NCBI GenBank assembly: GCA_977016875.1
Contig: CDRNST010000056.1
Span: 806,001 to 870,000, forward strand
Reading direction: 5' to 3'
Length of the DNA: 64,000 nt
From: Pavona decussata
Lineage: Eukaryota
Numbering within the stretch: position 1 is the stretch's first letter; each line of letters opens with the position of its first letter. Positions 40,088 to 64,000 of this stretch are shown one piece after another. The notes under the pieces are model-generated. The model made no database searches, was not told the DNA's origin, and saw only the letters and a list, made by a program, of their open reading frames with translations. The translations under genes and the position numbers were made by a program.

Positions 40088-40906
40088 GTGTCTAGATGTC
40101 TGGCAGCCGGACAGGATTTTCAAAATACTCCGTGTCCAGTAGTCTGATAGTTTCTCAATTTCGGGTCTTTGTACGCGAAATAGTCGATTTATGCAATGCT
40201 ATTTTTGTTTGCATCGCGAAGAAGTTGTCGAGTACAGTTCTCAATTTGTCGTGTCGATTTCTCTTACCGCTCCACACTCTATGCATCATCAGACTTGGAA
40301 ATTATTTGCGTGTTTGCAGTGACTGCAGGACAGTATTACTGGCAGTCTCATAATTTCTTTAATTTCGAGTCCATTTACGCGAAATAACCGATTTATGCAA
40401 TGCTATCTTTGTTTGGATTGCTAAAAGTTGTCGATTACAGTTCGATTTCAGTTATGCACCAGTCAATTGAAACCCCCACCCCCCAGGTCCCGGGGAAGGG
40501 TGGGGGATTTGACATAGGCTCTGGTCAAAAGGCATCAATATCCCTACCCCCTGAGGCTGGAGTTCAGATCAAACGCCACTACCCCTGGGGCAAGAAAGCT
40601 GATACTATCAAAAGTTCTAAGAAAAGAACGTGCAAGACCTACATTTACATGGGAAAATTTAATAATGTTCTTCTTCCAGGTTTGTGCAGCTTTGATTAAA
40701 ATGCTAATCACACTCTCATACAGTTTGTTCAACTATTAAACGAAGGAAAAGCATGCTGTATTTCATTATTGGTCATGACCATCTCATTACATGTATTTAA
40801 TAGACTGCAAATTAGTGAAATTTGAAATACACTGTATATATTATCACACAAACTCCGTTTATTTGGCTCAAGTTCAGTTTTTTAGAAATTTAATACCTTA
40901 AACTGT

Positions 40907-43900
40907 CTACTGAGGTGAATTCTCCATGGCTGCAACCTTGCACTGTGCGCAAATCCACTCTCCACTTGGTGCTGTTGAAAGCCCCACACACTGAAAATGG
41001 AACCACTCTATGGGACAGTCTTTATGTTCACAGGCAATCATGTCTCCACACTCTGGCCCTCCACAAATACACCACGAGTCAGGGGTGTCAACAGCTGCTT
41101 TACTAGACTTCTTCTTGAGAGAGTTCTCTTTTCTTTTTGCAGAAGCTTTCTGGGCACCTGCTTGGCGATGTTTCCTCACATCACTTAGGTGTCTTACCCA
41201 CATCTCAACTTCATCGGTACGGAGTAAGGTTTGCTTTGCTAGTTTCTCTATCTCATCGGACGTCAGTTCCAGACATTCCTTTTGTTTTTTGTCAAAGGCA
41301 TCTTTTATCACAGTACTTGGAGGAGAAATGGAGGCTTTGCTCAAATTGCAGTTATCCACTGCTAGCACCTCTTCTGGTCCCTTGTAGTGTCCACTACAAA
41401 TACCACTGCACTTGTCACATTCCTTGGCTCCCCAAGGTCGTTTAGGGTCTGGTACTGGAAATGGCAGGTACTGAATACTTGGCCCTCCTGGGAACCATAA
41501 TGAATCATTGGCTGGTTTTCCGTTCTTGCAAACTGGATGGATGCAACCCTCCTTGTAACAGGCTTTGAGAGCAAACACATACCCACTTGGAAGGTTTGGT
41601 ACCATGTGCTGGTTCCGTAAGTTCCAAACCTGTTCAAAGTAATGATATTGATTTGGCTCCTTCTTCTTGAGTTCGGCCTTAGCTGCTTTGGTTCCCCTCA
41701 AATACACAAGTAAATTCTGTCTCTGATCTTTCAGCTCTGTTGCATGCTTATCTGTGGCACCTCTGTACATTTTTATTACAGATGAACCAAATGGTATGTC
41801 ATTGACTCTATCCAAATACACCTGCAGTGCTGCTTCCATGTTTTCGTGTAATCTATCCTGAGATACTCCTCCCGTTTCAGTTTCGGCAGATCCACACAAT
41901 GTCGACGGTATAAAGAGATTAGCATGCGCTCGGCCAACAACACCATTCTGCAGCTCTACAAGATTGTAACAGCTCGCACCACTGTTCCTTGTTGTGACCA
42001 GTGTCAATTCCCTTCCTTCTTTTAGATGCCATTCGGTCCATCGAAACTGTACCTCAACATGACTTGGGCCCTCATCGGCTCCCCCATCAACTCTAATACA
42101 ATCAATGTTCTTTCCTTCAAAACACACATCCATTTCTGCTTTTTCTTTCAAACAGTACAAGTCAGCAAGATGCTGTGTTGCTGTTTTCTCGTGTAGAACG
42201 CCAGGTGCTTTGACAATCCCAACAGACACTTGACCAGTGGTTTCCGTCTTCATGAATAAGTAAGATGATGTTTGAAGTTGACCTCCGTGTTTGCTTACAT
42301 AGTCAGAATGTGACGTGAGTTCTGGCTTTCCTTCCAAGCAGACAGCTTTATGGTTCTTATGTGTGTAAGTACTATCCAGACGGAATCCTGCTTGGTCGTC
42401 TCTATTGAGAATCATTTTATCTGAACCGTCTTTTAGCTGAAGCATATCAAGGCCCTTGTAAAAGCAGTATGACCAACGGCTATCGGGATTGAATTTGACA
42501 TCAAAACCTTTACGTGCTCTTCTGCAAGTTATTGCTGCAACACCCTGGTAACGCTGAGCCGAAATCCTTCTCTTGTTCCTCACGGCACACAACTGAACAA
42601 CGGTACCATACGATATCGATATGCCATACTCCTTTTGTAGATGCTCTTGCATCCTTTTGTAAGTTACTTTAGGCCCTGTAGAATTCTTATTACTCGCGAA
42701 AGTAAAAACTCCAGTTCTTCGCCACTGGTCTGCACCAACCCGGTGTTTCTGAACAAAGTCTTCCATTTTTTTTCCTATATCAGGGTACTTTGTCACAATG
42801 GTAGACACTTTCTTTGGAATCTTGCGTTTAAGAAGGGCTTCTTTAGCTATAAGCTTTGAAGTTTGCCTTTTAGCAGCCATCTTGATTTTTTTTCTTTCTT
42901 GTTGCACTTTTTCTTTTGCTTCATCAGAACAAATATCATTGATTTCACACCAGTCTCCATCATCAGATTCACTGTCGGTCTCAAATATGGCGTTGCCTAG
43001 AGATTGTTTCCGCAGAATCTCTAAATATGCCTGTCTACTAATTTCGATCAATTGCTCTTCTGCTGTTGAAAGATCACTATAGGGGATGAAATCAGCAAAG
43101 TCAACAAGTATTTGATTTAAAACTTCAGGGTTATCTGTTGGTAACATGTTTTTTAGCTCAGCCACAAATGTAAACCAGTTAAGATTGTTTTCTCTTAGTA
43201 TTAACAACAGTGTTTCTCTTGAAGGTGCTGGATTTACAGTTGGATTTTTCAGTATGTCCGTGTCATCTGGATCAAACATACCCCTGTCTGATGTTCCTTT
43301 TTCCTTTGATACTGCATTTTCTTGTGCAACCTTAACAAAAGAACTCCCATGGTCTGAGCTGTCTGTATCATGTTGTCCTTTATTGGAATGCAGCTGATCA
43401 CTTAATGGAAACTCTTCTTCATCTTCTGTTGCATCTTCTGACGAAATCCATTGAACATCTTGAACTTCGCCAAGGTCAGTACTTTCATCCTCTGAATCAC
43501 TGGATTCGTAGTCAAAGCCAATGGTGCGCAAAAGTGCCTTTTCCTTGACTCGTGCAAGCTCTGCCACTGTTTGTTTGATTTCACTTGCCCTTCTAAGGGT
43601 CTCTTCGATTTTCCTTTGTTTTTCGCCGAGATTTTGAACTCCATATCGCTTCCGAGCTTCTTTAGCGCTAAGCTCAGAACAAGCAGTCATTTTTAGTAGC
43701 AGACGATCTGTTTCAGTGGTTGCTAGTTCACATAAGGCGTTTATTTTTTGTCTAGATGGAAGCTTTTCTCTGACATTTGCTTTCTTCGAATGCAAGAACT
43801 GTCTCATTATGACCACAAATCTTTGTGCATCAACTCCAGGTTGGAATTCTGTAGCATACAGTCTTTTTGATCCTGGGCCTTCAGGTGCAATTTCCATGAC

Positions 43901-44203
43901 AATAAGTGGCAGCTGCATTAGCAGCCTTACCGCCTTTGAACTTATATACTTGACCTTTGGAAAGTGTTTGATAAAAAATGCCTTCAGTTCAACAATTCCA
44001 TTATTTATGACATCGTGGGCAAACGAAATCAGTCCCTCGCACTGTGAACAAACTTGTAATTCTGAACAATGTTTCCTAGAGCAAAATTCTCTCCTTGCAG
44101 CAGGAACTTCTTCAAGTGTCATATCATTAATTAACGCAACATATAAACCATCGTCAACTTTGTATTTAGACACATCCGATAAACAAGAAGAAAGATGTGA
44201 CAC
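40907..44203 (-). CDS. DDE transposase (Zator/TP36-like) with C-terminal homeodomain-like helices and ING-type PHD finger
   Basis: 1098-aa open frame, open from ~44267 with no ATG at its 5' end. The putative triad NRDDQAG / RVDGGADEGP / SGASCYNLVE has D-43-E spacing. C-terminus WCICGGPECGDMIACEHKDCPIEWFHFQCVGLSTAPSGEWICAQC. Confidence 0.82.
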   Translation of the reverse strand: MSHLSSCLSDVSKYKVDDGLYVALINDMTLEEVPAARREFCSRKHCSELQVCSQCEGLISFAHDVINNGIVELKAFFIKHFPKVKYISSKAVRLLMQLPLIVMEIAPEGPGSKRLYATEFQPGVDAQRFVVIMRQFLHSKKANVREKLPSRQKINALCELATTETDRLLLKMTACSELSAKEARKRYGVQNLGEKQRKIEETLRRASEIKQTVAELARVKEKALLRTIGFDYESSDSEDESTDLGEVQDVQWISSEDATEDEEEFPLSDQLHSNKGQHDTDSSDHGSSFVKVAQENAVSKEKGTSDRGMFDPDDTDILKNPTVNPAPSRETLLLILRENNLNWFTFVAELKNMLPTDNPEVLNQILVDFADFIPYSDLSTAEEQLIEISRQAYLEILRKQSLGNAIFETDSESDDGDWCEINDICSDEAKEKVQQERKKIKMAAKRQTSKLIAKEALLKRKIPKKVSTIVTKYPDIGKKMEDFVQKHRVGADQWRRTGVFTFASNKNSTGPKVTYKRMQEHLQKEYGISISYGTVVQLCAVRNKRRISAQRYQGVAAITCRRARKGFDVKFNPDSRWSYCFYKGLDMLQLKDGSDKMILNRDDQAGFRLDSTYTHKNHKAVCLEGKPELTSHSDYVSKHGGQLQTSSYLFMKTETTGQVSVGIVKAPGVLHEKTATQHLADLYCLKEKAEMDVCFEGKNIDCIRVDGGADEGPSHVEVQFRWTEWHLKEGRELTLVTTRNSGASCYNLVELQNGVVGRAHANLFIPSTLCGSAETETGGVSQDRLHENMEAALQVYLDRVNDIPFGSSVIKMYRGATDKHATELKDQRQNLLVYLRGTKAAKAELKKKEPNQYHYFEQVWNLRNQHMVPNLPSGYVFALKACYKEGCIHPVCKNGKPANDSLWFPGGPSIQYLPFPVPDPKRPWGAKECDKCSGICSGHYKGPEEVLAVDNCNLSKASISPPSTVIKDAFDKKQKECLELTSDEIEKLAKQTLLRTDEVEMWVRHLSDVRKHRQAGAQKASAKRKENSLKKKSSKAAVDTPDSWCICGGPECGDMIACEHKDCPIEWFHFQCVGLSTAPSGEWICAQCKVAAMENSPQ

Positions 44204-44241
44204 ATATCGTGTATAAATGTCACTCCTAGGAGCGTCTTTAT

Positions 44242-47200
44242 CTACAAAAAATGAGCCTTGCTCCCACTATCAGCACTCCTTGTGCCATTATTGTTGTCTC
44301 CTTGTGACTCATTTTCTGGTGTATCATTCTCTCCAGGTTTATCTCCAGAATGCTTGGCGACTTCATCAGAAACCCTTGACGACTGTGTTTCTTCCTGATT
44401 AGTACAGGTAGCTTTAGTTGAATTTCCTCTGGCTGTACCTGCTTCCTTACTCAATGGTTCTGCTGGTGTAACTGACTTTCCCCAGAAAGATGTCAATGTC
44501 TTAGTTGAACTACTCGAAGACGATGACCCGTCAGAAGACGAGGAACTGGTTGACTGCTTATCTTTGTACCATTTGGCTTTTGCCTGTTTTTTCTGGATAA
44601 GCAACACCTCTTCTTCATGCTTTCTTTTTTCTTTTCGCAGCTTGGTGATCTCCTCTTCTACCGCAGAGGCTCGCATGTACTGTTTAAGTTGCTCATCTCT
44701 TGCTCTCTGTTGTTGCAAAAGTCGTATTCTATCCGCGAGGCTAGCTATATCATCTGTGAGTTCTTCAACCTTCTTAGTACGTAAGTGCTCAGACATTTTC
44801 ATTTTCTTGCTACTGCTACCATGCTCCATTGATCCTGTTCCAAACAATTTTGATCTTGATCTTTTCTTGCTGTAATTGTAGCCGTCATTATCAAGTTTTT
44901 TACGACAAAGTTCTATAAGGTTCTGTTTGTCATCTAACAGAGTGGGATTTTCAATGCACAATTCAAAGGCATTCGCATTCATTCGTTGATGGTATGTTCT
45001 TGAGCTTTTGGCATACAGCACACTTCTCTTCCTGATATCTTCAACATTCAACTCGACGGTCACTTTGTTAGAGTCTGCTAAAGAAGGCTCATTCTAGAGA
45101 ACAATAATGGAAGCCAAGTAACATAAATATATTGTCTGTGGTCTTATTCACACTAGAAAGATTTTGTTTATAATTATTTCTTTCAGATTTCAGTTTCATG
45201 GGTGACTGGATGTCACTGCATTTTAAAGAGCAACTTAACCCTTTAACACCTGTTTACGTCAGCTGACGTAAAAAGTTCATAAAATTGTTAATATTTGGTC
45301 TATTTCAATGAAATTTTGCCACAAAAATGGTCTTGGAAAGATCAGTTCATTTCCAGAATAAAATTGTACCCCTCTAGTATCTATGACCACCCCTGGAACT
45401 TTTGACAATTTTTTGTTTTACACATTTGCAGTGTGAGACATAACTCATGTTACTCTATTAACTGAGAGCTGCAAAATAAGCTATAGTTTGGGGGTATACC
45501 TAGTATGTCTGAAAATTGAGGCATTTCTGAACTTTTTGACTTTGACATTTTCAGCCCGTTTATGTCAAAGCCATGATTTACTTCTCCAATTTTGATATGA
45601 AATAAGGACTGCACTGGTCAAGACCTTTCAAATGGTATATCATACATTGCCATTTAGGTTTTATTTACGAGTTTGGAAAAAGGGGTAGAAAAACTCAGGA
45701 GTGAAAGGGTTAAACTGAATTTCATTAATAAAATTTAATTTTAAAAGCACAAACCAACAATATTCTAGCAATTTGAAAATAAAAATAGTCAACTAATAGG
45801 TTCTCACAAAAAGCTGGGAGAATAGGTTGTTACAGCACACATGTCAATGTAGCAACAACTACTAAATGCAGTCAAAAATCTGCGACCCAGACTAGAACTG
45901 AAAATAAGGTCCAGATAATTGAAGTGTCATGTATGAATACTAATTTAAAGTGCCACTACGATGAAAATTTTTGTATTTCTTTTTCGCTTTTTTTAGTGCA
46001 AATGTATTTAATAGGTTTAGACAAATGCGAATTGCTATAAATTAGATTGATATATTCTTACACGGCCCAGAAATAGCTGACTGAAAACCCACGAAAATCA
46101 CGTAAAATCCGTCCGCCATTACTCCGTTCATAAATCCGAGCCCACGTTTTACTGGTTTGCGATCTGGTACACTTGACTTGATTTGTGACGTAAATGACTC
46201 AACACGTCATGATTATTATTCCCTCCGGGACACAGACAACAAAGCCAAACGGCACGTGTTGAGTGACGTGTTGAGTCTTTGACGTCACAAAATCTTTAGG
46301 AAAACTCGATCCAACTCTCAGGGTTCGGTCCCGGTCATTTTTTAATTGAGTAATGGCGGCAAGCCGAATTCGAAATGTAAAGTTAAAATAATGGCACTTC
46401 CCGTACGAGTTTTGACTTGAAACTTTGCAAGGTAAGAAACAAGTACTTATATTTTCAAAATATGAAAAGGACAGAAAATGTATATTTTTGATCATAGTAC
46501 CACTTTAACAAATTAGAACAAAATTCTAAAATTCTAATATGTTATACATTTTAATATTTTAATTTCTGGCTAAAAACTCAATTTCCAGTTCAGGAAATGT
46601 TTTGTTTCTGCAAATGGTACCAGATGAGTGTATACATTCTTTGTACTTCTAGTGGTCCTCTGGGCCCCCACCCCTGCTTCTTGGAAATTTCCATTACCAC
46701 CCACGGAGGAGATATGAATATTTTTGTTGGAAAACCAAATTTTAATTGCATAGTTCCTACCTCTAAAGCAGGCCCAATTGAAACTGCTCCATCTTTCATC
46801 AATAAGGTTGTCTGTTTTGAACCACTACCAGAACAGTTCCCTGAGGGTGAAAAATAATTATTATATATTGTATTTAGGATGCAAGGCTGTTGCCTAGCAG
46901 GTTTCCGGTAGTCTGGGACACCCAAGGTACTGTTTTTGGTGCCCAGTAAATGTTTTTCCTAACATTTAACTTTTCTCAGGCTGGGCTCATAACTTCTCAG
47001 TTTTTGGCCTTGTGGGCTCCTTTAAATTTTTCTAAGGCAGAAGCCTTGAAATTTATTCACAAAATTCACAATATGAACACTATAATTGGAGTATCAAAAG
47101 ATTCAACTTCATTTTTCTTATTTAAAATTAAAGTAAATATTCAAGACATACTGTCAGAAGAACAGCTTCTTTAGTAGACAAGTATTAAAATATTTGGTCA

Positions 47201-48012
47201 TTGTAATATATATTCTTAGTCAATTATAGTACTTCATTTATAAGGTATCTGCACCTTAAAGTAAATGTGATGCACAATTTGCTATCACATGTGAAATATA
47301 GACCACTTTTTTCAGATTTTTGTTTTATCCTACTATTATTTGGCAAGAATAATAATCAAACAAATGACAAGTTTGTTTACCTTTAACACTTCCCTTCTCA
47401 TTTCTTGTTGTGTGCAGGGAATCTTTGGGCTGTGCAAAAAAAAAAAGCAAAAACAATTAGGGTTTGCAAACAGATCAGTTCCAAAAACTTTTTCAAAAAC
47501 TAAAGTATTATAAACATAAATCAGTGCAGACATACCTGATCGACGGATGTAGGTTGTGAAACATTTGGAGGTGGCTTCGACTGCAAAACATGCACTTGGA
47601 TTTTATCCTTGTGTTCAATGTTTTGAACGGTAACATCGACCCACTCCCCCCAGTCTTCTTCATACTTTTGGAAAATTATCCGTGCTTCACTGTCCAGGCT
47701 AAAACACTCTTTAACTTTTACAGCAACATCTTCATTTTGATGAAGGTCAAGAACCTTACGGCTTTCTTCGTATTGAAATAAAACCTGTAGGAAATCAAAG
47801 AAGAGAACAGCTCATGACCTGACCTTTCCGCATCATTACCCATGCATACCATTTGAATTTCAATGGAAATTAAATGTAAATAATACATCCAAACAATAGA
47901 AAACAAATTACTTGATTCAGATTGAATATCAATTGCAGTGGATGGTAAAGTAAAAGCATGATATGCGTGGATTCAAACCACTGTTACGTACCTTTCTTTC
48001 GCCTTCCGCCAT
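44242..48012 (-). CDS. ORF1 of the Zator-like element: 5 exons, ~416 aa, UBL/PB1-like N-terminus, NAB-NCD2-like domain and coiled coil
   Basis: GT-AG, phase-compatible, stop-free exons 48012-47992, 47784-47536, 47429-47381, 46840-46761 and 45093-44242. Motifs IIFQKYEEDWGEWVDV..IEHKDKIQV and EDIRKRSVLY..MNANAFELCIENPTLL..LIELCRK...GYNYSKKRSRSK. Confidence 0.82.
45239..45709. mobile_element. piggyBac-type MITE in ORF1 intron 4
   Basis: ttaa|CCCTTTAACACC ... GGAGTGAAAGGG|ttaa. Confidence 0.75.
45949..46504. mobile_element. Kolobok-type MITE in ORF1 intron 4
   Basis: ttaa|AGTGCCACTACGATGAAAA ... TTTTGATCATAGTACCACT|ttaa. Confidence 0.75.
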
Positions 48013-48689
48013 CTTGGAAGTTCCATGTGAAGTACTAGTGCCCAGTTCCACTCTTGCCCGAGGTGGGGACGGGAACCGCGGTCGAAAACAGTCAAATGCA
48101 CCACCCCCAGAGGACAGCTTGTTGTTCAAAAGTGATTCGATGCCCCTATTTTCCCCCACCCTTCCCCGGGACCTGGGGGGTGGGGGTTTCAATTGACTGG
48201 TGCATTACTGCCGGGTGCGGAGTGTTTTGAAAATGATGTCCGGCAGTAACCAAAAACACGCAAATAATTTCCAAGTCTGATGATGCATAGAATGCGGAGC
48301 GGTCAGAGAAATCGACACAACAAATTCAGAACTGTAATCGACAACTTCTTTGCGATGCAAACAAAAATAGCATTGCATAAATAGACTATTTTGCGTGCAA
48401 AGACCCGAAATTGAGAAATTATCGGACTGCCGGAGACGGAGTATTTTGAAAATCCTGTCCGGCTGCCGGACATCTAGACACAGCGTTTAATTAATACTAG
48501 TACTTCCAAGATCTCTGAGTGTGGGTATACTTAAAGTCAATATGAGCCAGAATTCGCAAAACTCTTTAGTGGCTTGTTACTTTAAATCATAATCGAACTT
48601 TGAACAAAGCAAAAACTTGCGGTTTTTTACCTTAAGTTTCTCATCTTTTGTGTCGCTTCTCATTACATCAACACTGACAACGTGCCCAA

Positions 48690-49243
48690 GATCCTTGTTA
48701 TTCTTCTTCAAAAGTCCGTTACTTTTATGAAGGAATATCAATCCACGATTATCTTTGACGAAATGCCACCTGGTTTCGGTGGGAAGTAAATTGCGCGGAG
48801 CTTTAGGTGTATTGTTCTTGTTCATAACGTTGTTTTTTAAAATTCGAGATGCTCAACTGAAAGCCGCCGACCGTACAAAGAGTGACATTACTTATCGTAC
48901 AGCCCACAACGTATTCCGGAAGTGGAATTGTCACTCAGTTACTATCTTTATTTGCAAAAACATGCCAACGCAAACACGCAAAAAATTGCCTGAATTTTCC
49001 TCACGGAAACGAATAGCCTTGTTATTCTTCCTCAAAAGTCCGTTAGTTTATGAAGGAACATCAATCCTCGATTCATATGTCGATTATCTTTGACGAAATG
49101 CCACCTGGTTTTGGTGAGAAGTAAATTACGCGAAGGTTTAGGCGTATTTTTCTTGTTCACAATTTGAGATACTCAACTGAAAGCCTTATCGCCGCCAACC
49201 GTACAAAGAGTGATATCAATTCCGGAAGTGGAATTGTCACTCA
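48690..49243 (+). promoter_or_regulatory. Duplicated ~230-250-bp upstream module of the DBF4-like gene, each copy with an ETS-like TTCCGGAAGTGG
   Basis: 48690-48940 is approximately repeated at 49017-49243, with CCGGAAGT at ~48916 and ~49222. The regulatory role is inferred. Confidence 0.45.
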
Positions 49244-49367
49244 CACTAGGTGATTAACAACACCGTTTGCTGTGAAGTTTTGAAGCACACTGTTGAAAGG
49301 CAATCAGTTTTATAGGATTGTAGCAATGTGGATATGTCACTAAAAGAATTGTTCGCTTAAACTAAGC

Positions 49368-51208
49368 ATGTCGGCAAAACGAAAACAAACAGTTCAGTTT
49401 TCAAAGGACAGTGAAAAAAAAAACCACGCAAATTATCTAACGAAAATGTACTTTCGAGAAGTCCTGCCACAAGTGATCTGTTTGATCTCGATGTGGACTC
49501 ATCAGAGCCTGAACTTCTAAGCGACCTAAGCGATACGGAAAAAACTTCCATTGACGAAAAGAACAAGGATAGAATACACCTCGGAAACCCCACAACGAGC
49601 GATCTCTTCGAACAAAGCAGTAATAACGATGAAGTCAGTCCTTGGCTGAACACAAGTGACATTTTTGAGCTACAAAATGCCAGTACAAGTGCCAGTGAAA
49701 AAGACTACCAAACTAAATGTGAAAGCATTGGAGGGGAGACAAATCAGAACGAATCAGATGACTTTGGATGTGTCTCTTTGGACCATTCAGATAATGAAGA
49801 CGGAACAACAGGTAAGCAAACAACTTCATGCAATCATTAATTGTTTTAGTTTCTGTTTCATACTTAGACTATACTTAAGTAGTCTTGGTTTATACTTAAG
49901 CTTATCTGCTTGAAAAGACTGTGCGCCTTACTTTAACGGGAAAAAGGATACGCCTAAAAGTTCGACTGATTACTACGCACTGTTATAAAATGATGTTAAA
50001 CCGACCGGCCTATAGAGTTGTAGTTTAAGCGTCAAGTAAAAACAATTTTGATTTCCTAAGTAAATTTGATGGTTTAATTTGCTTGTGCCACAAACTCTGA
50101 TCTGTTACGGCTTTCCGGCCTTTACTGTATTCTGGTGTTAGACTGTCCAGAATGATTTAATAACGACTGCCGTGAATTTAATTTGAAAGTAACAGCCGCG
50201 GAGAAGCCGCCCCATGGGCTCTAGTGAACACCAATCTCTTTTTATCTTTTCGCTATAAATAAAATATGTGCTGAATTTCGTGATGCAAAATTTGTAGCTA
50301 GAACATTCGTAGTATCCACAGCAGACGAGCATGTGGGAGTAACTTCCACAATGTGAAAAATATATGGGGAATTGGGATGAAGTTTGGGGGGGATGAAAAC
50401 GACTTCTGCCCTCACCATGGGTATCAAACTCGAACGTGGACTCGAATTTTGATTCTAATTCATAGTCGAGATTTCAAGGTGCCCAGAAAAACCAAACACG
50501 ATGAATCAAAAGACAGCAATAAACAATAAAAAAAGAACTAAGAATTTGCAAGAAATTTAATAACATCTATTTTATAACAAAAATGTCGTGTTGTCGACTG
50601 ATGTTGCTTTATCCGGCACATATATGTTCTCGATGCTTTTCTGCTCCTTTGCAGAATTGGATTTAAATGAGCATGATGAAACGACCTCTGATATCAATCA
50701 GTTCAACGGAGCATTAGTGTTTGTACATTTGCCTGGTTCGACAAGGTTTAGGGAACAGCAGATTGTCAGGAATGTTAGAAGTTGTGGAGCGGAAGTCAGC
50801 CAATTTTTTCACAGGAAGATTACTCATTTTATCACCTCACGCAGATGCTTAGAGGAAGAGAGGAAAAATAAATTAACTACAAAGGAACTTTTCATAGATC
50901 CATCTTCTCGTGGAGCAAAAATACTTGGTAGAGCAAACAAAAAACAAAGCCATTCCAGCGTTTTTGAGAAAGCCAAAGATTTAGGAATTAATGTTATCTT
51001 TCTTGAAGACATGAAACCTGAATTCTTTTCGTGCAAAGATCAGCGCAAAAAAGTGACGACAATCAAATCTGACCCTCCCATATGCGCCGACAAGAACACC
51101 GCTTCGGTTGAAGTAAGAGAACTGCGACCGCCATTCTTAAAAGTAGTTGACCAAACGCAGCGCTATCGACCTTTAGTCTTGGAAATGAAGGAATGGGAAG
51201 AGTACTAG
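49368..51208 (+). CDS. Truncated DBF4/ASK-like protein (BRCT-like motif N and motif M, no motif-C zinc finger), copy 1; frame break at an A10 run
   Basis: Exons 49368-49811 and 50655-51208 (phase 1). Motifs FNGALVFVHLP..VRSCGAEVSQFFHRKITHFITS, SRGAKIL..A, SVFEKAKDLGINVIFLEDM and LRPPFLKVVDQTQRYRPLVLEM parallel the DBF4 motifs N and M. Confidence 0.8.
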
Positions 51209-52829
51209 ACACATAACCAATGCTAAGGACAGTAAAAAATGGAAAGGTGTAGATGCGTTAACTTCCAAAATGCCAACAGTTAATCAACTTATAGAAAGCA
51301 AGATAAAACAACGTAATCAATCTGAGTAGCTTTTGTGACAAAACTCATTGTATTTGATTATCTTATCTAGAGAAGCCCGTTGTTTCAGACGGAGCAAAAT
51401 TGTTGGAGTAGCCGTACCAATGCTGGCTGCGAAATGCATTCACCGAATCGGAGTTAAAGGAAGTGTGGCTTTGAAATGGTTTTTTTAAGTGTACTTGTTT
51501 AAGCCAAATAATTTTTCGCTGGTCACGCGAACAAGAAATCTGACTTAATCATTGTTCTATGAGTGACTAAGTCAACCTTCCTACTTTTTTCACAACGACA
51601 TTTCCGTTTTTAAAAGAGTTTCTATGTATCGAGCTGTAAATCTGATTTAACTGTGATAATTGGTTACAACTGGCTCACCAAAATGTTTTTAATATTGGTT
51701 AAAAGTGATCAGCATCAAATTTCTCCTTGAAATATAAATGAAAACAGAATGGTCATTAGATTTACGGACATGACCACACAAGATGAATTTGCTTGATATT
51801 TTATTACCTTCTCCCCACCACTTCTGTAGGAAATGAATAGGCGCAGCAAATGAGATTTCAAATTTTGATCTTACGGTATAAAGGGTTAAAACAGAGATGA
51901 ATAGTCAATTTATAATTCAGTACATGTATTTTTCCTCACCGCAAAGCGTCAGTTATACAGTGAAAGGCTGCAGTTTGATATTTATCAGTGATTAATGAGC
52001 AGTGATCGATATTGTGACCCAATAGCTTTCCGTGATTCACTTCGGCCGATGTCGATATTTTCATCTTCCTTCTGAATCGTAGTGCTTTCAAAAAACAATA
52101 AATAGTGCAATAAAAATTCGTTTTTCGTATATATTGCTCTATTACAATTGAGAGTTCTCACATTTCCGACATTGAGAGGAGTAGATATATTGAACAATAC
52201 AATGTTCGTGCGTAACCAAACACCTTTTGATTTATTTTATCATCCACTGTTCTGAAGAAATAGATACAAGAACATATGATTGATGATTGCACTCCGAAAT
52301 CAATTTTTCAAGAACTTAGTTTAAATGCATTTTCATTTCTTGGTCGTGGTCACATCAAGTCATAGAACCAACTCAAAATTTTTGAAAGGGGTGGTCCTAG
52401 AGCGCCGAGTTCCACAGATTGTTTTGTATGAGGCGGGCGATCGTCAGAATTAAGGCTAAAATATCCTACATAAGTATTTCATTAACTATTAGTGAATTGG
52501 CCCAATACCACTTTTCCTCGAATTTATTCATTCTAGGTGACGGCCACCGCTCGAGTTTCGCGTCCCAGTTTAATATTCCTAGGACTGTAAGATTGCCTTA
52601 CAAGCCTATTATTGAGCTCTCAAGGCTATCTCCAGTAAAAGGTATGTCTACTAAACCATTTATATTTTACTATTGAAAGTTTTTTTAGTGATCTCACCCA
52701 AACAGAGAGGCTATTCAGTTTTAAGTAGTTAGTTAAGAATATGAATCGGAAATAGGTAATTGTGTGTACAATTTGTTAAATACCTCACTGGGTTTATATC
52801 AATTTTAATACAGCTTTGATTAATTTCAG

Positions 52830-53891
52830 TGCACTCACACAACTGCTGTTCTCGTGAATGCCTTCGCAAAATGGACTTTGCAGATATTCTTATATGCAGA
52901 AGGAAATATTCAACGATGTCCTATTTCAACCAGAAGCAGTGGATACTAGATTACTTATGGGACCACTCGAATCAAACAAGGTAAAAGAAGCACCAAAACG
53001 CCCTCTTGGCCTTTTAATTCAGTAACAGCTGCAAAACCCCATGTTGTGAGGCTGGGGGCAAGGGACGAATGCCCGGAGAGGATGGGTACGCTTGGAATTG
53101 ACTGAGTCATAACGCAGGCGATCCTTTCCACGGTGACAACAGTACTACAGATACTAGTTATGCCACGATTTCGAATGATATACCATGGAATATCCCACGA
53201 GTTACTTGTATTTTCTCGGTATACACACAAGCCTTTTACAAGCGATAATTAAGATATTCCACGTATATCACGAGAAAGCGTCCCATAACTATTTTATACC
53301 ATGCCATAGAAAGACAGTAGGCAGCACTTAGAAAGTGGGCATGCGCGCAGACATCATTTTGAATGGTTTTGAACTTGCTTCCTATTGTCTAAGATGACAA
53401 CGTGCCATTTTTTTAGTAGTTCACAGTGTTTTTTGTACAACCGGTCGTAGCATATCAGAACAATGGGGTGATGACTAGTAAAGGAATGTTTTACAATGTA
53501 TTTTTATTTTGTTTACATGTTGTACGGAAATGTTGCTGCCATGCCCTTTTATGTGCGTGGCCATGAGACTTGCATGGATGCCTGGAAAGCGGCAACAAGA
53601 GCGTAGACGATACCTTGAAAATTTATGTGAGTGGCGTCGTTGCCATTGACCCGGACACCCACGTAAGCACCGTGGATCAAAGCCCCAAAACAAAGATAGC
53701 TAAGGCTTGGATATGACTTTTCGTCAACAGAATTGGAGACAGAATGCCGGATACATTGGCCATAAACCTACCCAGCTATCTTGACAAACGCATCATCCAC
53801 GGTTATTTGACAGATGAATTATCCACTCTTGGAGAGAAAACAATTTGCTATTCCCAGTTTTGTCGCCTAATGAAGTCTGAATTCCCAGATG
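52830..53891 (+). pseudogene. 5' part of a second, spliced Sola-type transposase, cut at the array junction, copy 1
   Basis: Exon 52830-52980 gives CCSRECLRKM..I..CRRKY..Q.QWILDYLWDH. Region 53600-53891 gives KTKIAKAWI*LFVNRIGDRMPD..INLPSYLDK..IH.Y...ICYSQFCRLMKSEFPDV, comparable to VSYKKFRQLWHEFYPDV in ORF 2460-4307. TGA at 53714. Confidence 0.72.
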
Positions 53892-55238
53892 TTATTATAT
53901 ATTGTATTTAGGATGCAAGGCTGTTGCCTAGCAGGTTTCCGGTAGTCTGGGACACCCAAGGTACTGTTTTTGGTGCCCAGTAAATGTTTTTCCTAACATT
54001 TAACTTTTCTCAGGCTGGGCTCATAACTTCTCAGTTTTTGGCCTTGTGGGCTCCTTTAAATTTTTCTAAGGCAGAAGCCTTGAAATTTATTCACAAAATT
54101 CACAATATGAACACTATAATTGGAGTATCAAAAGATTCAACTTCATTTTTCTTATTTAAAATTAAAGTAAATATTCAAGACATACTGTCAGAAGAACAGC
54201 TTCTTTAGTAGACAAGTATTAAAATATTTGGTCATTGTAATATATATTCTTAGTCAATTATAGTACTTCATTTATAAGGTATCTGCACCTTAAAGTAAAT
54301 GTGATGCACAATTTGCTATCACATGTGAAATATAGACCACTTTTTTCAGATTTTTGTTTTATCCTACTATTATTTGGCAAGAATAATAATCAAACAAATG
54401 ACAAGTTTGTTTACCTTTAACACTTCCCTTCTCATTTCTTGTTGTGTGCAGGGAATCTTTGGGCTGTGCAAAAAAAAAAAGCAAAAACAATTAGGGTTTG
54501 CAAACAGATCAGTTCCAAAAACTTTTTCAAAAACTAAAGTATTATAAACATAAATCAGTGCAGACATACCTGATCGACGGATGTAGGTTGTGAAACATTT
54601 GGAGGTGGCTTCGACTGCAAAACATGCACTTGGATTTTATCCTTGTGTTCAATGTTTTGAACGGTAACATCGACCCACTCCCCCCAGTCTTCTTCATACT
54701 TTTGGAAAATTATCCGTGCTTCACTGTCCAGGCTAAAACACTCTTTAACTTTTACAGCAACATCTTCATTTTGATGAAGGTCAAGAACCTTACGGCTTTC
54801 TTCGTATTGAAATAAAACCTGTAGGAAATCAAAGAAGAGAACAGCTCATGACCTGACCTTTCCGCATCATTACCCATGCATACCATTTGAATTTCAATGG
54901 AAATTAAATGTAAATAATACATCCAAACAATAGAAAACAAATTACTTGATTCAGATTGAATATCAATTGCAGTGGATGGTAAAGTAAAAGCATGATATGC
55001 GTGGATTCAAACCACTGTTACGTACCTTTCTTTCGCCTTCCGCCATCTTGGAAGTTCCATGTGAAGTACTAGTGCCCAGTTCCACTCTTGCCCGAGGTGG
55101 GGACGGGAACCGCGGTCGAAAACAGTCAAATGCACCACCCCCAGGGGACAGCTTGTTGTTCAAAAGTGATTCGATGCCCCTATTTTCCCCCACCCTTCCC
55201 CGGGACCTGGGGGGTGGGGGTTTCAATTGACTGGTGCA
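53892..55238 (-). mobile_element. Duplicated right end of the Zator-like element (ORF1 exons 1-3 and TIR 55186-55238)
   Basis: Copy of 46858-48204. Confidence 0.92.
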
Positions 55239-56401
55239 TTACTGCCGGGTGCGGAGTGTTTTGAAAATGATGTCCGGCAGTAACCAAAAACACGCAAATA
55301 ATTTCCAAGTCTGATGATGCATAGAATGCGGAGCGGTCAGAGAAATCGACACAACAAATTCAGAACTGTAATCGACAACTTCTTCGCGATGCAAACAAAA
55401 ATAGCATTGCATAAATAGACTATTTTGCGTGCAAAGACCCGAAATTGAGAAATTATCGGACTGCCGGAGACGGAGTATTTTCAAAATCCTGTCCGGCTGC
55501 CGGACATCTAGACACAGCGTTTAATTAATACTAGTACTTCCAAGATCTCTGAGTGTGGGTATACTTAAAGTCAATATGAGCCAGAATTCGCAAAACTCTT
55601 TAGTGGCTTGTTACTTTAAATCATAATCGAACTTTGAACAAAGCAAAAACTTGCGGTTTTTTACCTTAAGTTTCTCATCTTTTGTGTCGCTTCTCATTAC
55701 ATCAACACTGACAACGTGCCCAAGATCCTTGTTATTCTTCTTCAAAAGTCTGTTACTTTTATGAAGGAATATCAATCCACGATTATCTTTGACGAAATGC
55801 CACCTGGTTTCGGTGGGAAGTAAATTGCGCGGAGCTTTAGGTGTATTGTTCTTGTTCATAACGTTGTTTTTTAAAATTCGAGATGCTCAACTGAAAGCCG
55901 CCGACCGTACAAAGAGTGACATTACTTATCGTACAGCCCACAACGTATTCCGGAAGTGGAATTGTCACTCAGTTACTATCTTTATTTGCAAAAACATGCC
56001 AACGCAAACACGCAAAAAATTGCCTGAATTTTCCTCACGGAAACGAATAGCCTTGTTATTCTTCCTCAAAAGTCCGTTAGTTTATGAAGGAACATCAATC
56101 CTCGATTCATATGTCGATTATCTTTGACGAAATGCCACCTGGTTTTGGTGAGAAGTAAATTACGCGAAGGTTTAGGCGTATTTTTCTTGTTCACAATTTG
56201 AGATACTCAACTGAAAGCCTTATCGCCGCCAACCGTACAAAGAGTGATATCAATTCCGGAAGTGGAATTGTCACTCACACTAGGTGATTAACAACACCGT
56301 TTGCTGTGAAGTTTTGAAGCACACTGTTGAAAGGCAATCAGTTTTATAGGATTGTAGCAATGTGGATATGTCACTAAAAGAATTGTTCGCTTAAACTAAG
56401 C

Positions 56402-58242
56402 ATGTCGGCAAAACGAAAACAAACAGTTCAGTTTTCAAAGGACAGTGAAAAAAAAAACCACGCAAATTATCTAACGAAAATGTACTTTCGAGAAGTCCTG
56501 CCACAAGTGATCTGTTTGATCTCGATGTGGACTCATCAGAGCCTGAACTTCTAAGCGACCTAAGCGATACGGAAAAAACTTCCATTGACGAAAAGAACAA
56601 GGATAGAATACACCTCGGAAACCCCACAACGAGCGATCTCTTCGAACAAAGCAGTAATAACGATGAAGTCAGTCCTTGGCTGAACACAAGTGACATTTTT
56701 GAGCTACAAAATGCCAGTACAAGTGCCAGTGAAAAAGACTACCAAACTAAATGTGAAAGCATTGGAGGGGAGACAAATCAGAACGAATCAGATGACTTTG
56801 GATGTGTCTCTTTGGACCATTCAGATAATGAAGACGGAACAACAGGTAAGCAAACAACTTCATGCAATCATTAATTGTTTTAGTTTCTGTTTCATACTTA
56901 GACTATACTTAAGTAGTCTTGGTTTATACTTAAGCTTATCTGCTTGAAAAGACTGTGCGCCTTACTTTAACGGGAAAAAGGATACGCCTAAAAGTTCGAC
57001 TGATTACTACGCACTGTTATAAAATGATGTTAAACCGACCGGCCTATAGAGTTGTAGTTTAAGCGTCAAGTAAAAACAATTTTGATTTCCTAAGTAAATT
57101 TGATGGTTTAATTTGCTTGTGCCACAAACTCTGATCTGTTACGGCTTTCCGGCCTTTACTGTATTCTGGTGTTAGACTGTCCAGAATGATTTAATAACGA
57201 CTGCCGTGAATTTAATTTGAAAGTAACAGCCGCGGAGAAGCCGCCCCATGGGCTCTAGTGAACACCAATCTCTTTTTATCTTTTCGCTATAAATAAAATA
57301 TGTGCTGAATTTCGTGATGCAAAATTTGTAGCTAGAACATTCGTAGTATCCACAGCAGACGAGCATGTGGGAGTAACTTCCACAATGTGAAAAATATATG
57401 GGGAATTGGGATGAAGTTTGGGGGGGATGAAAACGACTTCTGCCCTCACCATGGGTATCAAACTCGAACGTGGACTCGAATTTTGATTCTAATTCATAGT
57501 CGAGATTTCAAGGTGCCCAGAAAAACCAAACACGATGAATCAAAAGACAGCAATAAACAATAAAAAAAGAACTAAGAATTTGCAAGAAATTTAATAACAT
57601 CTATTTTATAACAAAAATGTCGTGTTGTCGACTGATGTTGCTTTATCCGGCACATATATGTTCTCGATGCTTTTCTGCTCCTTTGCAGAATTGGATTTAA
57701 ATGAGCATGATGAAACGACCTCTGATATCAATCAGTTCAACGGAGCATTAGTGTTTGTACATTTGCCTGGTTCGACAAGGTTTAGGGAACAGCAGATTGT
57801 CAGGAATGTTAGAAGTTGTGGAGCGGAAGTCAGCCAATTTTTTCACAGGAAGATTACTCATTTTATCACCTCACGCAGATGCTTAAAGGAAGAGAGGAAA
57901 AATAAATTAACTACAAAGGAACTTTTCATAGATCCATCTTCTCGTGGAGCAAAAATACTTGGTAGAGCAAACAAAAAACAAAGCCATTCCAGCGTTTTTG
58001 AGAAAGCCAAAGATTTAGGAATTAATGTTATCTTTCTTGAAGACATGAAACCTGAATTCTTTTCGTGCAAAGATCAGCGCAAAAAAGTGACGACAATCAA
58101 ATCTGACCCTCCCATATGCGCCGACAAGAACACCGCTTCGGTTGAAGTAAGAGAACTGCGACCGCCATTCTTAAAAGTAGTTGACCAAACGCAGCGCTAT
58201 CGACCTTTAGTCTTGGAAATGAAGGAATGGGAAGAGTACTAG
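56402..58242 (+). CDS. Truncated DBF4-like gene, copy 2
   Basis: Copy 1 shifted by 7034, with one E>K change (57886). Confidence 0.8.
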
Positions 58243-59863
58243 ACACATAACCAATGCTAAGGACAGTAAAAAATGGAAAGGTGTAGATGCGTTAACTTCC
58301 AAAATGCCAACAGTTAATCAACTTATAGAAAGCAAGATAAAACAACGTAATCAATCTGAGTAGCTTTTGTGACAAAACTCATTGTATTTGATTATCTTAT
58401 CTAGAGAAGCCCGTTGTTTCAGACGGAGCAAAATTGTTGGAGTAGCCGTACCAATGCTGGCTGCGAAATGCATTCACCGAATCGGAGTTAAAGGAAGTGT
58501 GGCTTTGAAATGGTTTTTTTAAGTGTACTTGTTTAAGCCAAATAATTTTTCGCTGGTCACGCGAACAAGAAATCTGACTTAATCATTGTTCTATGAGTGA
58601 CTAAGTCAACCTTCCTACTTTTTTCACAACGACATTTCCGTTTTTAAAAGAGTTTCTATGTATCGAGCTGTAAATCTGATTTAACTGTGATAATTGGTTA
58701 CAACTGGCTCACCAAAATGTTTTTAATATTGGTTAAAAGTGATCAGCATCAAATTTCTCCTTGAAATATAAATGAAAACAGAATGGTCATTAGATTTACG
58801 GACATGACCACACAAGATGAATTTGCTTGATATTTTATTACCTTCTCCCCACCACTTCTGTAGGAAATGAATAGGCGCAGCAAATGAGATTTCAAATTTT
58901 GATCTTACGGTATAAAGGGTTAAAACAGAGATGAATAGTCAATTTATAATTCAGTACATGTATTTTTCCTCACCGCAAAGCGTCAGTTATACAGTGAAAG
59001 GCTGCAGTTTGATATTTATCAGTGATTAATGAGCAGTGATCGATATTGTGACCCAATAGCTTTCCGTGATTCACTTCGGCCGATGTCGATATTTTCATCT
59101 TCCTTCTGAATCGTAGTGCTTTCAAAAAACAATAAATAGTGCAATAAAAATTCGTTTTTCGTATATATTGCTCTATTACAATTGAGAGTTCTCACATTTC
59201 CGACATTGAGAGGAGTAGATATATTGAACAATACAATGTTCGTGCGTAACCAAACACCTTTTGATTTATTTTATCATCCACTGTTCTGAAGAAATAGATA
59301 CAAGAACATATGATTGATGATTGCACTCCGAAATCAATTTTTCAAGAACTTAGTTTAAATGCATTTTCATTTCTTGGTCGTGGTCACATCAAGTCATAGA
59401 ACCAACTCAAAATTTTTGAAAGGGGTGGTCCTAGAGCGCCGAGTTCCACAGATTGTTTTGTATGAGGCGGGCGATCGTCAGAATTAAGGCTAAAATATCC
59501 TACATAAGTATTTCATTAACTATTAGTGAATTGGCCCAATACCACTTTTCCTCGAATTTATTCATTCTAGGTGACGGCCACCGCTCGAGTTTCGCGTCCC
59601 AGTTTAATATTCCTAGGACTGTAAGATTGCCTTACAAGCCTATTATTGAGCTCTCAAGGCTATCTCCAGTAAAAGGTATGTCTACTAAACCATTTATATT
59701 TTACTATTGAAAGTTTTTTTAGTGATCTCACCCAAACAGAGAGGCTATTCAGTTTTAAGTAGTTAGTTAAGAATATGAATCGGAAATAGGTAATTGTGTG
59801 TACAATTTGTTAAATACCTCACTGGGTTTATATCAATTTTAATACAGCTTTGATTAATTTCAG

Positions 59864-60925
59864 TGCACTCACACAACTGCTGTTCTCGTGAATGCCTTCG
59901 CAAAATGGACTTTGCAGATATTCTTATATGCAGAAGGAAATATTCAACGATGTCCTATTTCAACCAGAAGCAGTGGATACTAGATTACTTATGGGACCAC
60001 TCGAATCAAACAAGGTAAAAGAAGCACCAAAACGCCCTCTTGGCCTTTTAATTCAGTAACAGCTGCAAAACCCCATGTTGTGAGGCTGGGGGCAAGGGAC
60101 GAATGCCCGGAGAGGATGGGTACGCTTGGAATTGACTGAGTCATAACGCAGGCGATCCTTTCCACGGTGACAACAGTACTACAGATACTAGTTATGCCAC
60201 GATTTCGAATGATATACCATGGAATATCCCACGAGTTACTTGTATTTTCTCGGTATACACACAAGCCTTTTACAAGCGATAATTAAGATATTCCACGTAT
60301 ATCACGAGAAAGCGTCCCATAACTATTTTATACCATGCCATAGAAAGACAGTAGGCAGCACTTAGAAAGTGGGCATGCGCGCAGACATCATTTTGAATGG
60401 TTTTGAACTTGCTTCCTATTGTCTAAGATGACAACGTGCCATTTTTTTAGTAGTTCACAGTGTTTTTTGTACAACCGGTCGTAGCATATCAGAACAATGG
60501 GGTGATGACTAGTAAAGGAATGTTTTACAATGTATTTTTATTTTGTTTACATGTTGTACGGAAATGTTGCTGCCATGCCCTTTTATGTGCGTGGCCATGA
60601 GACTTGCATGGATGCCTGGAAAGCGGCAACAAGAGCGTAGACGATACCTTGAAAATTTATGTGAGTGGCGTCGTTGCCATTGACCCGGACACCCACGTAA
60701 GCACCGTGGATCAAAGCCCCAAAACAAAGATAGCTAAGGCTTGGATATGACTTTTCGTCAACAGAATTGGAGACAGAATGCCGGATACATTGGCCATAAA
60801 CCTACCCAGCTATCTTGACAAACGCATCATCCACGGTTATTTGACAGATGAATTATCCACTCTTGGAGAGAAAACAATTTGCTATTCCCAGTTTTGTCGC
60901 CTAATGAAGTCTGAATTCCCAGATG
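59864..60925 (+). pseudogene. Sola-type transposase 5' fragment, copy 2
   Basis: Copy 1 shifted by 7034. Confidence 0.72.
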
Positions 60926-62272
60926 TTATTATATATTGTATTTAGGATGCAAGGCTGTTGCCTAGCAGGTTTCCGGTAGTCTGGGACACCCAAGGTACTG
61001 TTTTTGGTGCCCAGTAAATGTTTTTCCTAACATTTAACTTTTCTCAGGCTGGGCTCATAACTTCTCAGTTTTTGGCCTTGTGGGCTCCTTTAAATTTTTC
61101 TAAGGCAGAAGCCTTGAAATTTATTCACAAAATTCACAATATGAACACTATAATTGGAGTATCAAAAGATTCAACTTCATTTTTCTTATTTAAAATTAAA
61201 GTAAATATTCAAGACATACTGTCAGAAGAACAGCTTCTTTAGTAGACAAGTATTAAAATATTTGGTCATTGTAATATATATTCTTAGTCAATTATAGTAC
61301 TTCATTTATAAGGTATCTGCACCTTAAAGTAAATGTGATGCACAATTTGCTATCACATGTGAAATATAGACCACTTTTTTCAGATTTTTGTTTTATCCTA
61401 CTATTATTTGGCAAGAATAATAATCAAACAAATGACAAGTTTGTTTACCTTTAACACTTCCCTTCTCATTTCTTGTTGTGTGCAGGGAATCTTTGGGCTG
61501 TGCAAAAAAAAAAAGCAAAAACAATTAGGGTTTGCAAACAGATCAGTTCCAAAAACTTTTTCAAAAACTAAAGTATTATAAACATAAATCAGTGCAGACA
61601 TACCTGATCGACGGATGTAGGTTGTGAAACATTTGGAGGTGGCTTCGACTGCAAAACATGCACTTGGATTTTATCCTTGTGTTCAATGTTTTGAACGGTA
61701 ACATCGACCCACTCCCCCCAGTCTTCTTCATACTTTTGGAAAATTATCCGTGCTTCACTGTCCAGGCTAAAACACTCTTTAACTTTTACAGCAACATCTT
61801 CATTTTGATGAAGGTCAAGAACCTTACGGCTTTCTTCGTATTGAAATAAAACCTGTAGGAAATCAAAGAAGAGAACAGCTCATGACCTGACCTTTCCGCA
61901 TCATTACCCATGCATACCATTTGAATTTCAATGGAAATTAAATGTAAATAATACATCCAAACAATAGAAAACAAATTACTTGATTCAGATTGAATATCAA
62001 TTGCAGTGGATGGTAAAGTAAAAGCATGATATGCGTGGATTCAAACCACTGTTACGTACCTTTCTTTCGCCTTCCGCCATCTTGGAAGTTCCATGTGAAG
62101 TACTAGTGCCCAGTTCCACTCTTGCCCGAGGTGGGGACGGGAACCGCGGTCGAAAACAGTCAAATGCACCACCCCCAGGGGACAGCTTGTTGTTCAAAAG
62201 TGATTCGATGCCCCTATTTTCCCCCACCCTTCCCCGGGACCTGGGGGGTGGGGGTTTCAATTGACTGGTGCA
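60926..62272 (-). mobile_element. Third copy of the Zator-like right end (TIR 62220-62272)
   Basis: Copy of 46858-48204. Confidence 0.92.
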
Positions 62273-63435: not shown

Positions 63436-63879
63436 ATGTCGGCAAAACGAAAACAAACAGTTCAGTTTTCAAAGGACAGTGAAAAAAAAAACCACGCAAA
63501 TTATCTAACGAAAATGTACTTTCGAGAAGTCCTGCCACAAGTGATCTGTTTGATCTCGATGTGGACTCATCAGAGCCTGAACTTCTAAGCGACCTAAGCG
63601 ATACGGAAAAAACTTCCATTGACGAAAAGAACAAGGATAGAATACACCTCGGAAACCCCACAACGAGCGATCTCTTCGAACAAAGCAGTAATAACGATGA
63701 AGTCAGTCCTTGGCTGAACACAAGTGACATTTTTGAGCTACAAAATGCCAGTACAAGTGCCAGTGAAAAAGACTACCAAACTAAATGTGAAAGCATTGGA
63801 GGGGAGACAAATCAGAACGAATCAGATGACTTTGGATGTGTCTCTTTGGACCATTCAGATAATGAAGACGGAACAACAG
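63436..63879 (+). CDS. DBF4-like gene copy 3, exon 1 only (window ends in the intron)
   Basis: Copy 1 shifted by 14068. Confidence 0.75.
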
Positions 63880-64000
63880 GTAAGCAAACAACTTCATGCA
63901 ATCATTAATTGTTTTAGTTTCTGTTTCATACTTAGACTATACTTAAGTAGTCTTGGTTTATACTTAAGCTTATCTGCTTGAAAAGACTGTGCGCCTTACT

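Follow-up and report, generated by a model that had tools for sequence, protein, structure and literature searches.

The stretch analysed here, hereafter the window, comprises 64,000 nt of the genome of Pavona decussata (assembly GCA_977016875.1, contig CDRNST010000056.1, positions 806,001 to 870,000 of the forward strand; contig C56 below), and coordinates given without a contig name refer to it. Positions 40455-48204 are occupied by a transposon of 7,750 bp that ends in 53-bp terminal inverted repeats (TIRs) without mismatch, TGCACC..GGTGCA. On the minus strand it carries two overlapping open reading frames (ORFs): the shorter ORF1, placed behind a predicted short exon and a predicted intron, and ORF2, which forms the body of the transposase. 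The features of the element are as follows, in their order along the window.

40452..40454, left target-site duplication, TTA (a single TTA at the empty site on contig C85 described below)
40455..40507, plus strand, left TIR at the gene's 3' end, 53 bp, starting TGCACCAGTCAATTG
40858..40863, minus strand, AATAAA polyadenylation signal, 44 nt past the ORF2 stop codon
40907..44266, minus strand, open frame of ORF2 (transposase body), -1 relative to ORF1, stop codon at 40907-40909
40940..41074, minus strand, ING-type PHD finger at the C-terminus (ING3 PHD, 1x4i and 7zmx, E 2e-18)
41147..41326, minus strand, homeodomain-like three-helix domain (MEIS2 homeodomain, VIA-align Z 8.2, root-mean-square deviation 1.5 A, 54 residues)
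41777..42508, minus strand, RNase H-like DDE catalytic core, D-D-43-E (fold nearest Mos1, Z 9.6)
42398-42400, 42086-42088 and 41954-41956, minus strand, candidate triad D602, D706 and E750
44168..44237, minus strand, predicted RNA stem-loop, 7 nt past the heptamer (minimum free energy -19.9 kcal/mol, z -2.4 against shuffled sequences)
44245..44251, minus strand, slippery heptamer U UUU UUG in the ORF1 frame, directly followed by the ORF1 stop codon UAG at 44242-44244
44245..45093, minus strand, ORF1 on predicted exon 2, ending ..AHFL (listed open frame 44242-45063)
45094..47991, minus strand, predicted intron of 2,898 nt, donor AAG/GTACGT and acceptor ..TTCTCTAG/AAT (the slash marks the exon boundary)
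45235..45713, dispersed repeat nested in the predicted intron, with many copies in the genome at 67-72% identity
45944..46512, nested repeats with inverted arms, similar to miniature inverted-repeat transposable elements (MITEs), 74-79% identical to genomic copies
47992..48012, minus strand, coding part of predicted exon 1, an ATG and six codons (MAEGERK), within CAAGATGGCGG
48152..48204, minus strand, right TIR at the gene's 5' end, 53 bp, perfect relative to the left TIR
48205..48207, right target-site duplication, TTA (a single TTA at the same empty site)

Both ends of the element and its 3-bp duplication can be fixed to the base, because a paralogous empty site (G000:C85) carries the flanks uninterrupted around one TTA; the joined flanks of the element match this site at 134/137 positions. 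The perfect 53-bp TIRs and the TTA duplication described in an earlier sequence-only reading of this DNA are confirmed by the sequence itself and by the empty site.

Searching 602 Mb of the genome for copies, we found three that are full-length and ~99.8% identical: the element of the window, C436:941734-949484 and C58:977214-984964. The flanks of the latter two are unrelated and each of these two copies has its own TAA duplication. Only 19 sites vary among the three copies across 7.75 kb, and ORF1 and ORF2 are open in all of them, in agreement with the earlier statement that both genes are uninterrupted. An internal-deletion derivative of 1,624 bp, with a TAA duplication, lies on C54. The genome also contains a non-autonomous family of elements ~1.25-1.58 kb long, whose first 25-40 bases are nearly those of the element (TGCACTAGTCAATTG...) and whose likeness to it is confined to the terminal 75-100 bp. 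Fourteen such elements have at least their first 25 bases in common with it, with 0-2 changes per end shown, and the target duplications of the members with both ends (n=14) are evenly divided between TAA (7) and TTA (7). The 3-bp TWA duplication (W being A or T) that had been noted for the element was recovered genome-wide, with TAA or TTA in 18/18 scored insertions. These results suggest a young family that can very probably still move. The three near-identical copies, their intact frames and the deletion derivative also speak for the suggestion of the sequence-only reading that the element is young or active.

ORF2 as listed extends over 40907-44203 (1098 amino acids, aa), and its frame is open from 44266. 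A search at E<=0.001 recovered 390 homologues of ~50% identity from cnidarians and echinoderms, and to judge from these matches the transposase clade is widespread in both groups. Public records label the homologues 'chromatin modification-related YNG2', a name that is misleading for annotation because these proteins are transposases. The candidate D/D/E columns are invariant in two alignments of this transposase family (A1 and A3), with 43 residues between the second D and the E. An AlphaFold model of residues 480-1030 (predicted local distance difference test, 81.5) has mariner-type proteins as its top three structural neighbours, namely the Mos1 catalytic domain, the Mos1 paired-end complex and the Metnase transposase domain (Z 9.2-9.6). 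Foldseek gave a probability of 0.97 for Mos1, and the IS21 transposase and retroviral integrases came next.

The transposase carries further domains besides its catalytic core. A Cys/His-rich module is also present and is common to the PF07592-type family introduced below, as seen in the profile alignment. The homeodomain-like fold was matched by the Pfam Homeodomain profile in 7/37 members of the transposase family (best E 1.4e-5), and the PHD finger was detected in 17/37; in a sequence-profile search of the PDB with the transposase, PHD fingers were the sole matches. The finger keeps the W..GDM..W positions relative to ING3. These aromatic and methionine positions are used by ING proteins to hold histone H3 trimethylated at lysine 4 (H3K4me3), and it is a speculative idea that the finger tethers integration to H3K4me3 chromatin.

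The sequence-only reading had pointed to an affinity with the Zator superfamily and TP36, and this affinity is supported by profile comparison through an intermediate, PF07592-type family. The transposase of the element gave no direct match to PF07592 or to NCBIfam ISAzo13, PF07592 matched 0/37 of its relatives, and no Pfam or NCBIfam transposase family was found in the core or in the 37 relatives. Zator cores in general have no detectable Pfam similarity (PMC5751038), so the missing PF07592 match does not exclude Zator membership. A genome-wide search with the PF07592 profile left the element unmatched and found a different, shorter family, represented by locus L038, whose ORF aligns with the core of the element in BLASTP (E 1e-4), the motifs D-G-G and Y-N-x-[IV]-E falling in the same columns. 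This shorter PF07592-type family counts 3,257 representatives at E<=0.001; in its alignment A2, 7/16 members match PF07592 and one of them, P0168, lies over the curated cut-off at 31.1 bits.

Aligning A1 with A2 by hhalign gave a probability of 96.4% (E 1.3e-9). With the richer alignments of the two families (A3 and A5, respectively), the probability reached 99.0% (E 8.4e-18) over 453 columns, in which the D/D/E residues coincide, and the match spans an N-terminal region, the catalytic D, D and E and then the shared Cys/His module. A language-model search also leads to PF07592 clusters, which we regard as a lead only. Bacterial ISAzo13/TP36 transposases are characterised by catalytic motifs of the form DGG..D/N ... 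S.[YW]N.[IV]E, their second D being separated from the E by ~43 residues, and both the motifs and the spacing match between the element and the eukaryotic PF07592-type family (A2/A5). An exhaustive A2 profile search aimed at bacterial TP36 listed 150 matches, all close relatives of A2, and tblastn of a PF07592-type protein against plasmids gave no match. Zator and TP36 have been placed near IS630/Tc1 (PMC7386202), and the mariner-type fold neighbours of the core fit this placement.

L038 has a counterpart, L039 (G000:C175:2103346-2106537 and 2235860-2239051), each with a 282-aa Zator-like ORF that scores 26.5 bits against PF07592, just under the cut-off. The two are 99.6% identical, inverted and ~130 kb apart; by their arrangement they look like an inverted segmental duplication and not like two insertions.

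Upstream of ORF2, the gene has a more complex anatomy. There is no in-frame ATG in ORF1 ahead of its conserved N-terminal part. The predicted start ATG adjoins the right TIR, and the donor AAG/GTACGT follows after seven codons, at 47992/47991; a good acceptor is present at 45094/45093. As read from the sequence, both boundaries of the predicted intron are phase 0, and because of this the predicted splice is in frame, which makes a spliced 5' exon of 21 coding nt plausible. In the product of ORF1, a conserved helical domain resembling NCD2 is accompanied by a long coiled coil, a basic patch (KKRSRSK) and a tail rich in Ser; the Pfam matches of ORF1 are weak and below the cut-offs (NCD2 E 0.005, MADF E 0.056). 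Paralogues of ORF1 lie upstream of the transposase at at least nine other loci in the genome, and predicted ORF1 homologues from other public assemblies also end in ..FL. The repeats within the intron (45235-45713 and 45944-46512) are older and are common to all three full-length copies. The earlier statement that MITE insertions occur only in an intron stands for these older repeats, the intron itself being an in silico prediction. Regarding the spliced accessory gene that had been proposed, the phase-0, in-frame splice remains plausible in silico, but ORF1 is most likely the upstream half of a frameshifted transposase gene and not an accessory gene.

The start codon of predicted exon 1 is located within AAGATGGCGG (48006-48015, minus strand). 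This sequence occurs three times in the window, where 0.03 occurrences are expected by chance, and all three lie in copies of the right end of the element. We take it to resemble the YY1-type core motif of many animal housekeeping starts.

Many other transposase lineages are present in the genome, 47-53% identical in the core, and several of them have long open frames. The junction could be read in five lineages, and in each of them the frame of ORF2 is -1 relative to that of ORF1, whose end it overlaps, and a U-run lies in the overlap:

this element, U UUU UUG UAG
lineage of C54 and C58b, ORF1 27% identical, U UUU UUA UAG
lineage of C2 and C382, ORF1 28% identical, U UUU UUA GUA
lineage of C84, ORF1 53% identical, U UUU UUG UAA
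lineage of C42 and C516, ORF1 25% identical (tblastn, partial), U UUU UAA

In 4/5 lineages, including this element, the junction has a U UUU UUR heptamer in phase; that of the element, at 44245-44251, is invariant across the three full-length copies. A stimulatory RNA structure would be expected 5-9 nt downstream of such a site, and stem-loops are predicted to begin 7-8 nt downstream in three of four lineages (z -2.4, -2.3 and -1.1). In addition, a 1,431-aa homologue (P0037) is annotated as a single protein consisting of ORF1 plus transposase. Because the -1 overlap and the U-run recur in every readable lineage, programmed -1 ribosomal frameshifting is the most economical reading, and it is probably what joins ORF1 and ORF2. 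RNA polymerase slippage on the T-run is a lesser alternative to a ribosomal frameshift. We also considered a 20-nt GT..AG 'intron' across the frame junction and rejected this candidate, which is too short for an animal intron and is not conserved in the other lineages.

Two of the lineages deserve a separate description. In L048 and L049 (C42:1670545- and C516:49570-), the stop codon is immediately preceded by no more than a U5 run (GAU UUU UAA). This would agree with slippage of a single tRNA in the P site, promoted by the stop codon, and not with tandem slippage. L055 (C84:545412-549534) is a decayed closer relative of the element, with ORF1 53% and a transposase fragment 88% identical. Despite its broken ORF2, it has kept the junction U UUU UUG UAA and a similar downstream hairpin (GACGCUCC..GGAGUGA).

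We propose that the element is expressed as one minus-strand transcription unit, in which exon 1 near the right TIR would be spliced over the 2.9-kb, repeat-filled intron onto ORF1. Most ribosomes would stop after ORF1 and release a ~290-aa protein with the helical domain and the coiled coil. A fraction of them would slip by -1 on U UUU UUG, before the stop codon and ahead of the stem-loop, and would thereby produce a less abundant ORF1-ORF2 fusion of ~1,400 aa. This fusion would be the transposase and would carry the DDE core, the Cys/His-rich module, the homeodomain-like fold and the ING3-like PHD finger. Such an expression logic would be that of orfA/orfAB in bacterial insertion sequences (ISs).

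Taken together, we consider it probable that the element is a young, autonomous cut-and-paste transposon of the Zator superfamily that is likely to be still active. The affinity with Zator, reached through the intermediate family, is supported by the profile alignments. The superfamily as understood here is related to ISAzo13/TP36, within the IS630-Tc1-mariner-like group, and the element is a notable variant of this known kind, not a new kind of element. Several points weigh against this interpretation. The link between the transposase family and PF07592 is transitive, no member matching directly; the putative activity of the element is deduced from copy identity; and the splice and the frameshift both depend on a reading of the sequence. 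One lineage shows no predicted structure past the junction (z 0.08), slippery sites work more efficiently with a last base other than G, and the paralogous lineages are of common ancestry and hence do not constitute fully independent tests.

Four other explanations were weighed against the Zator transposon with a frameshifted gene. It is unlikely that ORF1 and ORF2 are two independent genes, the first coding for an accessory protein and the second translated separately and without any frameshift, whether by way of an internal AUG, a promoter of its own or an alternative transcript. An in-frame AUG does exist 38 codons into the listed ORF2 frame, and automatic public gene calls start at the internal AUG of ORF2 (P0002). 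However, ORF2 overlaps the end of ORF1 in -1 in every lineage examined, with a U6R heptamer in four of them and U5 in the fifth, and a fused homologue of 1,431 aa exists; moreover, scanning ribosomes make poor use of an AUG that comes >1 kb after many others. We give little credence to the possibility that the element represents an unnamed sister of Zator at the superfamily level, with a large multi-domain transposase, TG..CA ends and no direct similarity to PF07592. Homology over 453 columns, including regions outside the catalytic triad, and the same D-to-E spacing and TWA duplication argue for inclusion in Zator, even though 0/37 family members match PF07592 and the architecture is unlike that of the 350-900-aa PF07592-type family (no PHD finger or homeodomain in the 10 members tested); superfamily rank is in any case a convention.

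The three copies could in principle be inert relics, in which the frame break is an inherited disabling mutation and whose dispersal is due to segmental duplication or to mobilisation in trans. The same frame arrangement in all three copies and the recent tandem duplication at the locus speak for this explanation, but we consider it very improbable: the copies have unrelated flanks and their own TWA duplications, and the frame arrangement is kept in lineages only 27-53% identical in ORF1 whose frames are otherwise open (the ORF2 of the C84 lineage being broken). Hardly any weight can be given to the idea that this is a PIF/Harbinger-type element, with a TWA duplication and, next to the transposase, a second ORF for a DNA-binding partner of the Myb/SANT type. 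Its profiles PF13359 and Plant_tran have no match on the transposase even at E<=10, whereas PF13359 finds at least 150 loci with genuine Harbinger transposases elsewhere in the same genome, and the core aligns to the PF07592-type family with 99% probability. The points in its favour are the TWA duplication and the MADF match in ORF1 (E 0.056), the latter below any threshold.

Comparison with described systems places the element closest to Zator, with which it has in common an ISAzo13/TP36-related DDE transposase, TIRs, a 3-bp TAA/TTA duplication and the occurrence in marine invertebrates. Zator and ISAzo13 are both said to make 3-bp duplications (PMC10045372), and TAA/TTA duplications are published for Zator-1 of Branchiostoma (PMC12905397). 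Since Zator-1 makes TAA/TTA, the TWA duplication of the element is typical for Zator and not unusual. The element differs from Zator in its much longer product (~1,100 aa for ORF2, ~1,400 aa with ORF1) and in having no direct PF07592 match, and it adds the homeodomain-like fold, the ING-type PHD finger and an ORF1/ORF2 layout that needs a -1 frameshift. Its TIRs are also longer, 53 bp starting TGCAC compared with 33 bp for Zator-1. Relative to the PF07592-type family, the three additions are the frame-slip ORF1, the homeodomain-like fold and the PHD finger; PHD and homeodomain were absent from 10 tested members of that shorter family (350-900 aa). Bacterial ISAzo13/TP36 elements share 3-bp duplications with the element (PMC10045372). 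In contrast to them, the element is eukaryotic, has an intron, is ~5x larger and carries chromatin-reader domains, and the likeness between the two runs via the intermediate family only.

The layout of the gene resembles orfA-orfAB of IS3/IS1 and retroviral gag-pol (HIV-1 U UUU UUA), in which a short upstream ORF is likewise followed by a catalytic ORF in -1. The element also has, as they do, an in-phase heptamer of the X XXY YYZ type where the frames overlap, and in three of four lineages a stem-loop is predicted 7-8 nt further on. The element differs from these systems in being a eukaryotic cut-and-paste transposon, and its frameshift is a prediction from the sequence. Programmed frameshifting has reportedly been mentioned together with a eukaryotic DNA transposon in a paper on yeast hAT elements (PMC4316626), and our literature search found the two mentioned together only for these elements. 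PIF/Harbinger elements have the same TWA 3-bp duplication and two ORFs; the element differs from them in having no DDE_Tnp_4 and in its ORF1, which is co-linear with the transposase and overlaps it, where theirs is a separate Myb-like gene. Among solved structures, the catalytic folds of Tc1/mariner transposases (Mos1, Metnase, Sleeping Beauty) come nearest (Z 8.0-9.6, Foldseek probability 0.82-0.97), but sequence identity is 7-14% with no sequence-level match, and the duplications are TA there and TWA here. CACTA/EnSpm (CMC) was rejected as an assignment: the termini read TGCAC.. and not CACTA/CACTG, and no CMC Pfam domain was found. A literature search, with Repbase and Dfam outside its scope, found no published description of this architecture.

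The right part of the element is included in a tandem array:

46858..64000, tandem array of a 7,034-bp unit, beginning inside the element and continuing to ~C56:873960
46858-53891, 53892-60925 and 60926 onward, units of the array

The unit is repeated in tandem at least three times, and each extra unit carries the right 1,347 bp of the element together with the TTA and the flank. Unit 1 is distinguished from unit 2 by 5 sites, and unit 2 from unit 3 by 1 site in 3,075 bp. No obvious microhomology was seen at the junction of the 7,034-bp array. The tandem duplication is later than the insertion of the transposon. One segment of the array, 53095-53111, had been put forward as a related terminus on a nearby non-autonomous piece. 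It has only ~9 bases in common with the TIR, and its 200-bp surroundings are otherwise found only in the local tandem units; we rejected it as a non-autonomous transposon end, these surroundings being absent from the genome outside the 7,034-bp units. The related suggestion that the element drives non-autonomous pieces is retained only in part: relatives with near-identical ends do exist elsewhere in the genome, but the piece at 53095 is unrelated.

The flanks of the element consist of a short repeat rich in inverted copies. The insertion point lies between inverted copies of this repeat of ~100-200 bp (40087-40454 and 48208-48482 in the window; C85:4875590-4876153), which forms small direct and inverted arrays at several loci. 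Within each TIR, a 9-bp G/C stem pairs CCCCCACCC with GGGTGGGGG around a loop containing CCCGGG (arms at 40473-40481 and 40498-40506, mirrored within 48153-48186), and the left TIR also presents the palindrome CAATTG at 40464-40469. The stem and the palindrome may be transposase-binding or hairpin features.

Beyond this locus, the results would be compatible with a widespread clade of Zator elements in marine invertebrates in which a conserved -1 frameshift sets the ratio of ORF1 to transposase, and in which an ING3-derived PHD finger and a homeodomain-like fold steer integration to H3K4me3; we put this forward tentatively, as a possibility with nearly even chances. Our literature search found no experimentally shown transposition of any Zator element, and the intact, near-identical copies described here constitute a candidate active element of a rarely studied superfamily for bench work. 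Should the conserved U-run junction prove to be a site of programmed -1 frameshifting, the element would join the very few eukaryotic DNA transposons with IS-like orfA/orfAB control. With an ING-type PHD finger fused to a DDE transposase, DNA integration guided by histone marks becomes open to direct testing and, if the proposed steering is true, the three intact copies would offer a natural system for testing chromatin-guided cut-and-paste transposition.

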